Positions 25,503 to 33,357 of a stretch of 64,000 nt of DNA are shown in pieces. The notes under the pieces are model-generated. The model had not been told where the DNA came from. It searched no databases and worked only from the letters and a program-made list of their open reading frames with translations. Position 1 is the first letter of the stretch. The number at the start of each line of letters is the position of its first letter. Location of the stretch: positions 310,001 to 374,000 of the IMG/VR virus record IMGVR_UViG_3300032782_000001; one strand, written 5' to 3'. A program made the translations under genes and the position numbers.

Positions 25503-26057
25503 ATGAGCATGGAAGCAGGAGTCGTCGTAGGAAAAGACGGTAAGGCAATTCATTGGCATCTTCCGGAAGAGAGGACCGGCGGATCTCTGCCCGATTCTCA
25601 GGCTCTCTGGGATTTCATCTGGAAGAATCGAAATGAAATTATGGGGATCGCCCACAGTCATCCTGGACGGGGACTTCCGGGGCCATCACACACGGATGTA
25701 ACCACTTTTGCCGCCATTGAGGATGGTCTCGGGAAGAGGCTCCTTTGGTGGATTACAAGCGAAGACAAACTTGTAGTCATCAAATGGGTAGGTCCTGGAA
25801 AGCACACTTATTCATCCAGGGAGATCTCGAGTAATGACCCCGAATGGTTAAAGCCACTCCGAAACGCATCTCACGAACTTTCAGAAGCTCGACTCGAAGA
25901 AGTTTGCCAGTATGTAACGGAGACTCACCGGGAAGCTGCTCGACGGGTGTCTGCAGGAAAAGCGGCGCTCGAGGACATGGTAGTGTCAGTCCTCAACGGG
26001 CTCCCCCATGCCGATCCAGATGAGATTCGGAAGAAGATCCTGGATTCGGTGAAATAA
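25503..26057 (+). CDS. JAB/MPN+ metallopeptidase
   Basis: N-terminal Glu (MEAG) and HSHP...PSHTD JAMM motif. Confidence 0.85.
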   Translation: MSMEAGVVVGKDGKAIHWHLPEERTGGSLPDSQALWDFIWKNRNEIMGIAHSHPGRGLPGPSHTDVTTFAAIEDGLGKRLLWWITSEDKLVVIKWVGPGKHTYSSREISSNDPEWLKPLRNASHELSEARLEEVCQYVTETHREAARRVSAGKAALEDMVVSVLNGLPHADPDEIRKKILDSVK

Positions 26058-26102
26058 ATCCAAAACTTGGGAACGTAAGTTCCTCTTCTAAGGAGAATCG
26101 AA

Positions 26103-26372
26103 ATGAACGAAATGGTAATCGAGGCAGGACAGGCGAGGGTCAACATCACGTGGCAGGGTCAGAACGGGGACATGCCTGGCGCTGTCCATTACGACTCGAC
26201 GGACGGCGACGTCCGACAGTGGGTCACGGAGGCCGTTCGCACGGGTGGGGTGCCTGGTATTCGTGCTGACGCCGCCGCGAATTTCACGGACTTCGTCGTG
26301 GAGAGGTTCCCGTCGACGCAGGATAGGCCCTTCAACCTGATCCAGGTCAGGCCGAAGACGCCGTTCGGTTGA
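26103..26372 (+). CDS. Ubiquitin-like small protein (putative)
   Basis: 89 aa; strong AAGGAG RBS; ends LIQVRPKTPFG with a terminal Gly; between JAB and E1. Confidence 0.65.
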   Translation: MNEMVIEAGQARVNITWQGQNGDMPGAVHYDSTDGDVRQWVTEAVRTGGVPGIRADAAANFTDFVVERFPSTQDRPFNLIQVRPKTPFG

Positions 26373-26800
26373 TGGAGAAGAATTCGGAAGAAGAAGCCTG
26401 GAAACAGGCTGTCGACCTCTGGAAAAAACTCGCCCAGATCCGAGGCGTGGCGTACTCCGCCATGTTCGCAGTCAGGGGTGAGATGATAGAAGAAGAAAAA
26501 GCGGAACTCCTTGAGGACCTCGAAAAAGTCCTCAAGGAGACTGCTGTTGACTTCCCCAATGGGGTGGATTGGAACGCTCACGAAAACGGTGAGTTCAAGC
26601 TTCTTCCTAAGAAGATAGAGGATTACATGGAAGCCAAGATCAAGACAACTGGATTCAAAGTGGAAATTCAGTTGAACGAATATGAGGCAGATTCCATTCG
26701 TCGGGCCGTAATCGGCCGTGATGATCGGGAAGCTCAGAAGCTTATGCAACAACTTTCCGAGACCGTTTGGAAGGCTGTGGTTAACGCTGTAAACAAGTGA
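26372..26800 (+). CDS. Hypothetical helical protein
   Basis: TGATG coupling with the Ubl gene; overlaps the E1 start. Confidence 0.6.
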   Translation: MEKNSEEEAWKQAVDLWKKLAQIRGVAYSAMFAVRGEMIEEEKAELLEDLEKVLKETAVDFPNGVDWNAHENGEFKLLPKKIEDYMEAKIKTTGFKVEIQLNEYEADSIRRAVIGRDDREAQKLMQQLSETVWKAVVNAVNK

Positions 26801-27381
26801 TCTCCATGAAGAACATCACCATCGTGGGAGTAGGAGCACTCGGATCGCATTTCGTGCAATTCGCGCGCGGGTTCCCGGCTGCTCTCAAGATTATTGACTT
26901 TGATCGAGTGGAACAGAAGAACGTCGCGTCACAGTTCCACGCGAAGACCTCGGTCGGCAAAGGAAAGGTCCTCGGTCTCCAACAGACCGTCCAGCTCCTC
27001 TGGGGTATGAAGCTTACCACAGTGCCTCATAAGTTGACTTCCGAAAATGAAGCACAAATTCTCGGTGGGGCCGATCTCATCGTAGATTGCCTCGACAATG
27101 GGGCAGCACGACGCATCGTCCAGGGATTTGTTCGAAAGAATACTATCCCGTGCGTTCACGGGGCCTTGGCCGCAGACGCCGCCTTCGGGCGGGTCGTATG
27201 GGACGAGTCATTCGCAATTGACGATGAGCCGGGAGAAGGTGCGCCTACCTGCGAAGACGGCGTTCATCTCCCTTTCATCGCCCTCGCCTCGTCTTTACTC
27301 GCTCGCGCAGTACAGGTCTTCATCACGGACGGGAAGAAGATCGGATACCAAATCAGACCAAACGGCGTCGTCCAAACGTGA
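26797..27381 (+). CDS. ThiF/E1-like adenylating enzyme
   Basis: VGVGALGS, IDFDRVEQKN, GKV, DLIVDCLDN..ARR; candidate catalytic Cys in APTCEDG. Confidence 0.9.
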   Translation: MISMKNITIVGVGALGSHFVQFARGFPAALKIIDFDRVEQKNVASQFHAKTSVGKGKVLGLQQTVQLLWGMKLTTVPHKLTSENEAQILGGADLIVDCLDNGAARRIVQGFVRKNTIPCVHGALAADAAFGRVVWDESFAIDDEPGEGAPTCEDGVHLPFIALASSLLARAVQVFITDGKKIGYQIRPNGVVQT

Positions 27382-28367: not shown

Positions 28368-29342
28368 TTACAGATCTTCGAAATCTGACTCAAACAAAGA
28401 TCGCCAGCGACGCCGGTTTTCTAACCATATCACATATTCATTTGTGATTTCAGCACGATTAGCGATTCTTAGGAATTCCGGTGCGTTAGTTTCAAGCAGG
28501 AGCTTCTGTGCCAACATTTGATCTGGCACAGGGATTTCAATTTTGGACACGATGCAAAATTCATATCCATCACAACGAATGTTGTGGGAACCGAAACTAC
28601 TTATAGTATAGGTTTTACCGTCACTGCCAATGGTTTGGAAACTTTTGGTTGCCAGGTACTGGTCACGCTGAACGGTAGAAAGGTGACTAGTAAGTAAGAT
28701 TTCAGCCCTACGAAGGCATTCTAATTTGGCCTTTCGGAGTGCGGCAGATTCACAAGCCCTGCGCATATCAGGAGACATGGAGACTAGCGCTTCTTGAGTA
28801 ATTCCCTCTTCCACGAGCAATCGCGCTTGTGTCCGCAAAATACGATCCGCCGCCATCTTCCGTTGCATCGCGGCGCGTTTTGCGACCCGAGACAACATCA
28901 TGGCAGTAATAGCAGGATGAATACGGGTGAAGTCTTCCCCATGAGGAGGGAAAGCGGCTTTCCAAGCCACCGGAAGCACCTCATCTAAAGATCCTGAAAA
29001 ATGAAATTCACCAGGACCCGGAATAAACATGAGCCCGATGTTCGCAAAACTGAATTCCCGACTAACAGTCCGGAAGACTAGTGTGAAGACACCATCGCCT
29101 CGAGTCTCATTGAGACGATTTTTCAACCAACGGAGGAATTTCCGACGGTGGAAAGGCTGGAATTCGAAGAGCGGGACTACGGGTCGAGAAGACGCGTACC
29201 CGACAGGGTCGACATTCAAGAAATCGAAGTTGGCAGGATGGACATACCATCCGTCTTCGTTCCATGTCCCGTGGGCCGGGACACGATCATATACTGGAAT
29301 GGAACCTTCTTCTAACCAATCGAAGAAGATGTTGATCGCCAT
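28368..29342 (-). CDS. Hypothetical protein
   Basis: 324-aa ORF. Confidence 0.65.
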   Translation of the reverse strand: MAINIFFDWLEEGSIPVYDRVPAHGTWNEDGWYVHPANFDFLNVDPVGYASSRPVVPLFEFQPFHRRKFLRWLKNRLNETRGDGVFTLVFRTVSREFSFANIGLMFIPGPGEFHFSGSLDEVLPVAWKAAFPPHGEDFTRIHPAITAMMLSRVAKRAAMQRKMAADRILRTQARLLVEEGITQEALVSMSPDMRRACESAALRKAKLECLRRAEILLTSHLSTVQRDQYLATKSFQTIGSDGKTYTISSFGSHNIRCDGYEFCIVSKIEIPVPDQMLAQKLLLETNAPEFLRIANRAEITNEYVIWLENRRRWRSLFESDFEDL

Positions 29343-29347
29343 AAATG

Positions 29348-29561
29348 TGGAGGACGGGAGGGTTTGAGAAGCGAGTCAGGTTAACTCACAGCTGAACTTT
29401 CAGTTCTGAATCCTCACGGCTGAGAGCTGATTGGCCCAAAGGCTTGACAGCTAACCGCTAGGATATCGGTGACGTTCGCTTATGATGCCCTGTTAAGGGG
29501 CGCCATTCCCGTGAGGGAATAGGTATCCCGACTACGCAGCTCTCGCCCTTCCCGTCCCCCA
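29348..29561 (-). ncRNA. Structured RNA downstream of the coiled-coil gene, with a 7-nt periodic tract
   Basis: Minus-strand closing stem TGGGGGACGGGAAGGG/CCCTCCCGTCCTCCA (its G-U pair exists only on the minus strand); internal hairpins; heptamer run at 29384-29432. Confidence 0.65.
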
Positions 29562-29570
29562 GTCCTCACG

Positions 29571-30083
29571 TCACCAGGCAGGTGCCAAAATGGTGGCGTG
29601 GTTTGCCTTCTCGACCGCGTCGTTGCACCGATCGAAATCTGCTTGGAGCTTCTCCACCTGAGAAGCACGCTCAGCTTCCGGCAGATCGCACTTCCAGGGA
29701 ACTTGGACACGACGACGCTTGCCATCGTCATCGTAGTCCCAGTCCTCTTCTTTCGTGTCCTTCTGCGCGCGAACAGGGAGCTCCTTGAGCCAACTGATCC
29801 GGGACTTCAGCTCTTCGAGATGACGAACGGCCCAGGCCAAGACGACCACTTGCCCATCGATCTCGACCTTCGTGAGCGCATTCGTGACGGCCACGCGAGT
29901 CTGAAGGGTGACGAGCTTTTGGCGTAGCGTTTCCGCCTGCTCCGTGCATTGGCCGAAGGCAAACGCAGGCGGATTTTCCGCCTTGTACGTGACGGCAGCC
30001 TTGGAACGATCGAGACGCTCCTTCAGGTCACCCTTGATCTTCTTGACCTGACGAAGCGCTTGGGAAAGAGTCATGTCAGCCAT
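29571..30083 (-). CDS. Coiled-coil protein resembling the DIP1984/'septicolysin'-like family
   Basis: MTLSQAL...LQTRVAVTNALT...DAVEKANHAT; family resemblance from memory. Confidence 0.6.
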   Translation of the reverse strand: MADMTLSQALRQVKKIKGDLKERLDRSKAAVTYKAENPPAFAFGQCTEQAETLRQKLVTLQTRVAVTNALTKVEIDGQVVVLAWAVRHLEELKSRISWLKELPVRAQKDTKEEDWDYDDDGKRRRVQVPWKCDLPEAERASQVEKLQADFDRCNDAVEKANHATILAPAW

Positions 30084-30776: not shown

Positions 30777-31400
30777 ATGCACGATTTGCGAGACGTCTTC
30801 ATCCATGATCCGATTCGACATGCTGGGATTTATGATGCAAATCCCGGAGACAACTGGTGGATCATGATGGATAAAGGAGAACCAAAAAGGGTAACCATCG
30901 GTTCTCAACCAAAGCCCGCGACCACAGAAGACGGTGAAATGACACTCGCGTTCCACGCTAACATTCGGATTCCATATTTCGAAATCGTGGACGAGGTTGA
31001 AATTCAAAAGAAGTTAGCAGAACTTCTGGTGCACGCGGCAGAAAAGCGTGGATGTTCAAAAGCCGTCAGTATCTTCCAAGTCCTGGAGAAACTTAGGGAA
31101 GGACTTGGAAACAAGCCTCTTCGGCATGTCTTGGCATCCAGGAAAACCTTCTTGGCAAAAATCCGAGATCCTTACGAGGAGGCACTTGGACCCAACATTA
31201 GAGCGCCTAAGAAATGGGCACAATTCTTCTACGAACTGAAAGGAACCAAGCCAGTTTGGAATGAATCACTGCCCGAAGGGATGTTTATTGGCACCACCAA
31301 TCAAGAAGAAGTGGGATGGGTGACGTGCTCGGGCGGCTGGTTTACCCCTGTAGGAGCTGCTGTGAATGAATCAGGAGTCTTTGGAGTCCACCTGAGTTAG
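30777..31400 (+). CDS. Hypothetical protein, possible truncated capsid-protein paralog
   Basis: C-terminal half aligns by eye with the C-terminal half of the capsid protein. Confidence 0.5.
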   Translation: MHDLRDVFIHDPIRHAGIYDANPGDNWWIMMDKGEPKRVTIGSQPKPATTEDGEMTLAFHANIRIPYFEIVDEVEIQKKLAELLVHAAEKRGCSKAVSIFQVLEKLREGLGNKPLRHVLASRKTFLAKIRDPYEEALGPNIRAPKKWAQFFYELKGTKPVWNESLPEGMFIGTTNQEEVGWVTCSGGWFTPVGAAVNESGVFGVHLS

Positions 31401-32086
31401 ACTCGGCCCATTTTGGCAGCGTAGGCCTGAATCAAGGTCAGGTAATCTCGATTCGGAGCCCCTGCGGGAGTCTGGCTGCTGGTGAACGAAATTGCTTCGT
31501 TCACATTCATGCCGTGGGCTCGTATCATGTAGCAAGCCACGACTGCTCCAGTCCTGTCTGCCCCAAGAGAACAATGGACATAAATAGCTCGAGCAGGGTC
31601 ATGAAGAAGTTCCGTAATCCGGTCCACCAAACCACACAGGTCCCAACCGGGAGACGTGAGAAAGACATGAGGATCTTGACCTTGACCTACCCCTTCAATA
31701 GGCCACCACATGAAATTGGCAGTCCTAGAAGAAGAAGAGGTACGGATTACACAAGGATGTAATTCCTCGGCATCGTAATCTGGTTGTAGGTATGGAGGCC
31801 AATACGATGGTCCCCATAAATCTGGAAGTCCAAGAGAAGACAATTCCGCCTTTAGCATAGGATGTTCACCCGTGCTGTCAATAAGGGACACTATAGTCAT
31901 AGTTGTCCCTGCGAGCTTAGAATCAATCCTATCCGCGATACCGGAATAGGCGAAAGTCCCATCTCCGAGCATCGGGAATGGTCCGCGAATGAACAAACTA
32001 CTGTTAAAACTATCCACTAGTGCTACACGAGATGGATCAAAAACTCTCACATTCAAATTGTTGGAAAAAACTTTTACGAATGACAC
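31397..32086 (-). CDS. Dual-specificity/tyrosine phosphatase
   Basis: HCSLGADRTG (CX5R motif). Confidence 0.85.
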   Translation of the reverse strand: MSFVKVFSNNLNVRVFDPSRVALVDSFNSSLFIRGPFPMLGDGTFAYSGIADRIDSKLAGTTMTIVSLIDSTGEHPMLKAELSSLGLPDLWGPSYWPPYLQPDYDAEELHPCVIRTSSSSRTANFMWWPIEGVGQGQDPHVFLTSPGWDLCGLVDRITELLHDPARAIYVHCSLGADRTGAVVACYMIRAHGMNVNEAISFTSSQTPAGAPNRDYLTLIQAYAAKMGRV

Positions 32087-32114: not shown

Positions 32115-32309
32115 ATGCCGACGTATGATTATGCCTGCGAAGCCTGTTCTCATGAATGGGAACAAGATCAGGGAATCAACGAAGAACCCATCAAAAAGTG
32201 TCCGAAATGCGGTGAAGAAAAAGCGAAGAGACTTATTGGAGCCCCTCACTTCATTCTGAAAGGTAATGGTTGGTCATCTGATGGATATGGTGGTAATTCA
32301 TCCGTATAA
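32115..32309 (+). CDS. FmdB-family zinc-ribbon protein
   Basis: MPTYDYACEAC...CPKCG...FILKGNGW. Confidence 0.9.
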   Translation: MPTYDYACEACSHEWEQDQGINEEPIKKCPKCGEEKAKRLIGAPHFILKGNGWSSDGYGGNSSV

Positions 32310-32553: not shown

Positions 32554-33357
32554 TCATATTAAAATGTGTTCTTCTGACGTCGGACTGCCATAGTATTTAG
32601 CTTTATTAACTCGACATTCAATGTTTCTGGACACGCGAATCCAGCATCGAGTGTGAGTGTGGCCGGCAAGAACGACGACGTGTCGTTTATTCCTACCGTT
32701 CATGACTCGTTCGATCATGCGACCCATTGTCACATTCGTGTTGTATGGAAGCCAGAATTTCTCCATTAAAGTCCCCACTGCCCTAGTAGCCTCTACCCAA
32801 GGTGGGAAATGGGTAAGAACGTATATTGTTTTGAAATTCTCTAGTGCGGAAGTAAGTGAGGCTTCGAGAAGGTCCGCGGACGCCTGAGCGAGGGATCGGA
32901 AAGCATCAACTCTGGCTTCCATACCGGATAAAGTTAGAAAATCATAGGTTTGGAACCAGTCAGTCGTATATCGGAGCCAAGATGGATCTCCCCGCCGGGC
33001 GTCGTACCAACCCTCAGTACCTATGAGAGCTACTTCTTCGTTCAGAGAAACAACGCCAGACTCCGTCATCCAATGCAAATTAGGATATGTAGCCGAAAGC
33101 CTTCGTATATCTCCGTGGACGCTCGCGAGCGTCCTTCCGTGATAATCATGATTCCCCAAAACGAAATAAATCGGGCACGACAAGGAAGCCGCGAACTTAC
33201 CAAGACAATTCTCTAAATGAGAACCGTTACTTATATCCCCCGTCAAGAAAATTCCAGAGGGGCTTTCCACTCGTAAGTGACGCACGAGATTTCGAGTCGC
33301 CCACGGAAGAGCGAAATTTAAATGCGTATCCGTGAGCCACACGTACTTCTGGCGCAC
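32554..33357 (-). CDS. Calcineurin-like metallophosphoesterase
   Basis: DTH, GDIS, GNHD, THFPP, GHTH. Confidence 0.9.
   Translation of the reverse strand: MRQKYVWLTDTHLNFALPWATRNLVRHLRVESPSGIFLTGDISNGSHLENCLGKFAASLSCPIYFVLGNHDYHGRTLASVHGDIRRLSATYPNLHWMTESGVVSLNEEVALIGTEGWYDARRGDPSWLRYTTDWFQTYDFLTLSGMEARVDAFRSLAQASADLLEASLTSALENFKTIYVLTHFPPWVEATRAVGTLMEKFWLPYNTNVTMGRMIERVMNGRNKRHVVVLAGHTHTRCWIRVSRNIECRVNKAKYYGSPTSEEHILI

Follow-up and report, generated by a model that had tools for sequence, protein, structure and literature searches.

In the hut operon of Bacillus subtilis, the regulator HutP is encoded immediately upstream of the terminator that it controls and binds two clusters of three XAG motifs with 4-nt spacers, which lie in the terminator between the hutP stop codon and hutH, and binding opens the terminator (PMC2425495). 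HutP is a hexamer (PF09021), and its two sites, 12-17 nt apart, flank the stem. In the trp leader, the ring protein TRAP (TrpBP, PF02081) reads eleven (G/U)AG repeats with 2-3-nt spacers, i.e., a period of 5-6, one per subunit, on single-stranded RNA to choose between terminator and antiterminator. In type III toxin-antitoxin systems (ToxI and relatives), tandem repeats of about 36 nt are placed upstream of an endoribonuclease toxin gene and are cut by the toxin. Here, we describe a conserved, structured phage RNA of about 220 nt with AG dinucleotides at a period of seven, which lies directly after a gene related to the DUF6847/DIP1984 proteins, a family with a crystal structure (PDB 3KDQ, released in 2009) but without known function.

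The analyzed window comprises 64,000 nt, bases 310001-374000 of a 436,316-bp virus record with direct terminal repeats from a wetland metagenome. Our study concerns a 170-aa gene on its minus strand and the 228-nt spacer between the stop codon of this gene and the AUG of the next co-directional gene (Table 1). Further loci and contigs found by our searches are denoted by L and a number. A preliminary description of the sequence had pointed to a coiled-coil gene, followed by about 214 nt enclosed by a roughly 15-bp stem on the minus strand and by seven consecutive heptamers with a U(C/G)AG-like core, and had suggested one heptamer per subunit of an oligomeric ring or filament of the upstream protein, as a two-component ribonucleoprotein, an assembly ruler or an RNA antitoxin. 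What it observed is confirmed by our analysis, with the correction that the protein is not a plain coiled coil. What it inferred is supported in part: the non-coding, strand-specific closed domain with a genuine 7-nt period and its genetic tie to the upstream gene are borne out, one heptamer per subunit is a reasonable inference with a real precedent in HutP, the antitoxin is unsupported, and the assembly ruler is pure speculation.

Table 1. Features of the locus and its surroundings, in window coordinates; RNA features are read on the minus strand.
Feature	Position (strand)	Description
170-aa gene	29571..30083 (-)	DUF6847/DIP1984-fold family (predicted fold); stop codon 9 nt before the closing stem
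Whole RNA element	29342..29564 (-)	Match to covariance model R1, 189.9 bits, E 6e-67; the only match in the window and in the 436-kb genome
Short motif (GU)GAGGACU	29562-29570	Between stop codon and 5' arm of P1; recurs in many loci, at the same place in L002, L003, L046, L059, L062, and L045; role unknown
P1, 5' arm	29547..29561 (-)	UGGGGGACGGGAAGG; inverted repeat I1 with the 3' arm
P1, 3' arm	29348..29362 (-)	CCCUCCCGUCCUCCA; followed by ACAUUUA, which overlaps the AUG of the next gene
P1b/P2, 5' strand	29524..29546 (-)	Extension of the closing stem, approximate limits; from MFE and duplex folds
P1b/P2, 3' strand	29363..29381 (-)	Extension of the closing stem, approximate limits; begins at the last base of heptad B7
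P3 hairpin	29505..29520 (-)	AUUCCC UCAC GGGAAU; from the MFE fold; a hairpin of different sequence sits at the same place in close relatives; not part of the covariance model
P4 hairpin	29487..29501 (-)	GCCCC UUAACA GGGC; from RNAalifold; all 4 pairs show changes on both sides
Conserved segment	29460..29476 (-)	AACGUCACCGAUAUCCU; apparently single-stranded, just 5' of site A
Possible pseudoknot (inverted repeat I6)	29568-29575 with 29468-29475	GGUGACGU, overlapping the stop codon, is complementary to ACGUCACC in the conserved segment
Site A	29439..29459 (-)	Three heptads, AGCGGUU AGCUGUC AAGCCUU; family consensus AGCNNUY AGCNNUY AGA; a possible 4-bp hairpin presenting the middle heptad is weakly supported
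Site B	29380..29428 (-)	Seven heptads, AGCUCUC AGCCGUG AGGAUUC AGAACUG AAAGUUC AGCUGUG AGUUAAC; family consensus AGCNNUS
Downstream gene	28368..29342 (-)	324 aa, co-directional, starts 6 nt after P1; no Pfam, PHROG, NCBIfam or PADLOC match; not a conserved partner
JAB-domain protein	25503-26057 (+)	In a row with two small ORFs (89 and 143 aa, no family) and the ThiF/E1-like protein (25503-27381 in total)
ThiF/E1-like protein	26797-27381 (+)	The row looks like a ubiquitin-like conjugation module in a very large phage
Dual-specificity phosphatase-like gene	31397-32086 (-)	Just upstream of the gene-plus-RNA module
Zn-ribbon protein	32115-32309 (+)	Just upstream of the module
Metallophosphoesterase	32554-33357 (-)	Just upstream of the module

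The two arms of the closing stem P1 are 15 nt long and 87% complementary, with 184 nt between them. On the gene's strand, the region folds at -112 kcal/mol with z = -5.8, and none of 200 shuffles was as good, while the plus strand gives z = -3.5. Six of the seven heptads of site B start with AG, and in the 436-kb genome this is the only place, on either strand, with at least six of seven. On its own this count is weak evidence, since about 0.3 such sites are expected by chance, and it is the conservation among relatives that settles the matter. The further heptamers GCTAACC and GCTAGGA of the preliminary description belong to a second, conserved site of three heptads (site A), and the U(C/G)AG core proposed there agrees with the measured consensus U6 S7 A1 G2. 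A coding function was rejected, because the period is not a multiple of three, the helices covary, and there is no conserved ORF. No Rfam 15 family matches the window at gathering thresholds; at E up to 10, the only match is a chance CRISPR-DR37 hit of 21 bits against a threshold of 40. A scan for tRNA and tmRNA returned none, and Tandem Repeats Finder saw no array.

Homologous loci were collected in several ways. Three close protein homologs (46-71% identity) sit on short metagenomic contigs, and all carry an alignable element after the stop codon. A profile search of 1.8 billion representatives revealed 358 clusters of the protein. A locus search of viral contigs with the single protein returned nothing, whereas searches with a 20-sequence alignment, look-ups of individual representatives, and a genome search yielded further loci. 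No homolog was found in cultured phages or plasmids by tblastn. A first DNA pattern, itself heptad-periodic, mostly retrieved unrelated (AGCGGTC)n arrays, and a more specific pattern found only L009 and the window's own record. Four gene-plus-RNA modules (L057, L058, L068, and L069) lie in metagenome-assembled "bacterial" genomes of about 1 Mb, two of them found in a sample of 301 genomes of one class; they may be binned phage contigs or prophages of small-genome bacteria, which could hint at the host.

Absence of the stem and of the periodicity from the flanks of homologs had been named in advance as an observation that would speak against the proposal, and it was not what we found: every homologous locus with enough 3' flank, down to about 37% protein identity, has a gap of 230-340 nt holding the same architecture. 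A covariance model built from seven sequences found 20 distinct elements with E from 6e-67 to 2e-4 (non-seed members 1.6e-18 to 1.9e-4), all directly 3' of the gene; the element is present in 20 of 20 loci of this subfamily. There is exactly one copy in the window's genome and in each of four other phage records of 74, 183, 187, and 274 kb. One more distant homolog (L076:1201-1930, 183 aa) has no closing stem and no heptad run, and its stop codon overlaps a 62-aa, very basic ORF instead. The RNA is therefore a trait of a subfamily, not of every relative. Downstream ORFs are co-directional and start shortly after the U-run, but are unrelated between loci, and the small gene upstream is conserved only in the closest relatives; thus, the RNA travels with the upstream gene.

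In most loci, a G-rich strand begins 3-10 nt after the stop codon and pairs with a C/U-rich strand about 200 nt downstream, closing a domain of about 215-290 nt. This duplex (P1, extended by P1b/P2 across internal loops) is worth -33 to -70 kcal/mol in all 18 loci examined. Native arm pairs average -52.8 kcal/mol, against -37.9 for arms swapped between loci, and the native partner is the best one in 11 of 18 cases. A MAFFT-only alignment of diverse members gave a nearly empty RNAalifold consensus, and an Infernal alignment was needed. On the latter, with 21 aligned matches, all 11 modelled P1 pairs change on both sides and 94% of cells are paired. Over the whole modelled structure, 87.6% of cells pair, compared to 72% when 3' partners are shuffled and 40-49% when they are slid by 1-3 columns, and 21 of 25 pairs show compensatory change; as the alignment is fitted to the model, these counts lean towards it. 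G-U pairs are common in P1 and, together with the covariation, fix the RNA to the gene's strand. The inner helices other than P1 and P4 are poorly defined. The conserved, apparently unpaired segment (AACGYCACCGAYAYCCU) follows two or more variable hairpins and precedes the heptads. Its possible pseudoknot with the stop-codon region, or a translation-sensitive alternative pairing, is supported in the window and in L003, which has GGUGGCGU with ACGCCACC, i.e., one compensatory change, but is not evident by eye in L044 or L046.

With respect to termination, the stem is present in all loci, and in most homologs a run of 3-7 U follows the 3' arm within 1-3 nt, e.g., AUUUUUUUG, GGGUUUUUCC, CUUUUUC, and AAAUUUUUAC. 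The window has only UUU at this place, and a consensus terminator scan does not call the element, because the loop is about 185 nt; the criterion of a G/C-rich stem directly followed by a U-run thus gave no clear answer. P1 looks like the stem of an intrinsic terminator with an ornate "loop" of 200 nt.

Over 16 sequences with seven units each, position 1 of the site B heptad is A in 111 of 112 cases (99%) and position 2 is G in 106 of 112 (95%), position 3 is C in 69%, positions 4-5 are near random, position 6 is U in 63%, position 7 is C or G in 71%, and any base may precede the AG. An autocorrelation at lag 7 had likewise been suggested beforehand as a check: summed over 18 elements, AG-AG pairs at this lag number 126, against 18 +/- 4 in composition shuffles and 11-26 at other lags, with harmonics at 14 and 21. 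Site A usually starts 22-24 nt before site B, such that the two are out of register by 1-3 nt; the window and L003 have a small extra hairpin in this linker. Some family members carry a hairpin inserted in site B, and the heptads on both sides still add up to seven in L059 (2150-2240; 4+3) and L062 (1535-1610; 5+2), while L045 (2150-2235) and L061 (850-940) appear to split similarly with less certain counts. A search of the gap-free heptad blocks for column pairs that stay complementary while varying found no stacked pairs within or between the sites, but only trivial G2-U6 coincidences. Thermodynamic pairing probabilities of the heptads (0.45-0.72 against 0.63 overall) were uninformative. The simplest reading is that the AGs are recognized as single-stranded bases, and that their number and spacing are under selection.

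The gene in the window is intact. AlphaFold2 with 75 homologs predicts, at pLDDT 97.6, four long helices and two beta-hairpins. The only structural match is 3KDQ, the DIP1984 protein of Corynebacterium diphtheriae, at about 16% identity (Foldseek E 4.5e-4, probability 1.00, TM 0.77/0.85); no other PDB fold scores at E<0.01, and Swiss-Prot models give nothing. By sequence, the window protein stays below the curated cut-offs, with 18.2 bits against 27 for Pfam DUF6847 and 22.3 against 70 for NCBIfam DIP1984_fam (E 1e-4), yet 63 of 75 subfamily members match DUF6847 at E<0.01, with the best at 6e-12, so that the profile scores do not settle its membership either way. The proteins are about neutral (median pI 6.8) and share conserved polar residues, including Q8, R11, K17, N68, N154, E158, and N161. 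A literature search for the family's names returned only papers that use the label "septicolysin", and no mention of a function; in the Acinetobacter plasmid literature, members carry this label with an admittedly unknown role (PMC3358182). A word-based search with P0090 returned only P0090 itself, and canonical bacterial members, such as the "septicolysin" gene of plasmid GQ377752, were not examined for a similar 3' RNA. HutP (PF09021) has no match in the six-frame translation of the genome at E up to 10, and TRAP (PF02081) is absent as well.

We consider the element an undescribed phage RNA family that forms the 3' end of the mRNA of a DUF6847/DIP1984-fold gene. The covarying, terminator-like closing stem, the 3 + 7 heptads with nearly invariant AG, and the one-to-one co-occurrence with the gene among variable neighbors rest on the comparative data, whereas the following is inferred and held only tentatively. 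The heptads would be a single-stranded, periodic landing pad with one protomer of a homo-oligomer per 7 nt, most likely of the protein encoded immediately upstream. Binding on the nascent RNA, just before the 3' arms of P2 and P1 emerge, and in particular occupancy of site B, whose last unit abuts the 3' strand of P2, would decide whether the closing stem forms, and would thereby set termination against read-through into the variable downstream genes, or the stability of the protein's own mRNA; a stable ribonucleoprotein particle is the alternative outcome, and the sequence does not discriminate between these. Neither binding, whose absence had been named beforehand as refuting the proposal, nor relief of termination, oligomeric state or transcript ends were measured, and no RNA-seq data were examined. 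Moreover, the protein family has no known nucleic-acid function, a 3 + 7 layout fits no known ring symmetry, and it is not obvious how binding inside the loop would change P1. A further-reaching reading, to which we give a fair though less than even chance, is that the DUF6847/DIP1984 family are sequence-specific single-stranded-RNA binders that polymerize with a 7-nt register, about ten protomers assembling in these phages on a dedicated 3 + 7 AG-heptad rail inside a closed RNA domain; this would be a new kind of defined phage ribonucleoprotein or riboregulator, with neither protein nor RNA related to HutP or TRAP.

Among the alternatives, binding of the heptads by a different factor, a host RNA-binding protein or another phage protein, is the least improbable, though still unlikely; the RNA would then act as a sponge, decoy or regulator that merely rides on the 3' end of this mRNA. 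The periodic array argues for a protein ligand without saying which one, and the protein has no known RNA-binding relative. Moreover, many other viral contigs (within L005-L041, e.g., L008, L012, L013, L021, L025, and L027) carry tandem heptamer arrays of the same AGCNNTC consensus (AGCGGTC AGCGGTC AGCTTTC ...), in which TCAGC is kept while two positions vary; they are often followed by an inverted GCTGANN array, lie in intergenic regions, occur several times per contig, and five such records lack the DUF6847-like gene. However, the strict linkage with this gene across phages of 74-436 kb with otherwise unrelated neighbors is hard to explain if the gene is irrelevant, and HutP or TRAP homologs are not present in the genome. 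An RNA-only function, with periodic tertiary contacts, RNA-RNA multimerization or a ribozyme, and the gene as mere neighbor or client, appears more doubtful still. The domain is large, closed, highly structured, and conserved, and other large phage-associated RNAs such as ROOL and GOLLD form RNA-only assemblies, but positions 4-5 are free, no covarying partner of the AGs was found, and a 7-nt repeat of single-stranded dinucleotides is not a known RNA tertiary motif.

It is improbable that we are dealing only with an elaborate terminator, mRNA stabilizer or RNase III processing stem, whose heptads are remnants of slipped-strand repeat expansion. The G/C-rich stem formed by distant flanks, the U-run, and the simple (AGCGGTC)n arrays in other phages speak for it, yet the stem encloses a conserved 200-nt domain with specific motifs, and Tandem Repeats Finder sees no repeat because only AG, C3, and U6 are kept while the rest has diverged. 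Site number and order are conserved at 37-70% protein identity, and the count is kept across insertions, which is purifying selection on the AGs, not decay. Very unlikely are two further readings. DNA iterons for a replication, partition or packaging protein would be compatible with direct repeats in an intergenic region and with the folding of the plus strand, but this folding is weaker than on the gene's strand, the frequent G-U pairs of P1 would be A-C mismatches on the other strand, compensatory changes preserve RNA helices, and a 7-bp period is off the DNA helical repeat. A type III-like toxin-antitoxin pair shares with our locus a repeat-bearing RNA strictly linked to one small protein on mobile genomes; however, the units measure 7 nt, without tandem repeats of about 36 nt, the RNA is 3' of the gene, with no terminator between the RNA and a downstream toxin, and no endoribonuclease family, ToxN/AbiQ-type or PADLOC hit of weight was detected.

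The element would add a structured RNA family widespread in uncultivated phages, and would provide the first testable functional hypothesis for the DUF6847/DIP1984 fold, where the fixed 3 + 7 count makes stoichiometry and geometry directly accessible to binding assays and cryo-EM. If the protein reads AG every 7 nt, this is an independent invention of the HutP/TRAP principle, in which a periodic RNA is read by an oligomer, using a different fold and a larger, fixed number of sites. Compared to TRAP, the period is 7 instead of 5-6, there are 10 instead of 11 repeats, and the protein fold is different. The closest precedent is the hut operon, with which the locus shares the NAG motifs at a period of 7, the clustering into two sites, the position right after the stop codon of the putative regulator, the terminator-like stem, and the co-directional downstream genes. 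It differs from hut in having 3 + 7 instead of 3 + 3 sites, a linker of 2-10 nt instead of 12-17 nt, sites inside a closed domain of 200 nt rather than astride the stem, the size and conservation of this domain, and an adjacent protein of a different fold.
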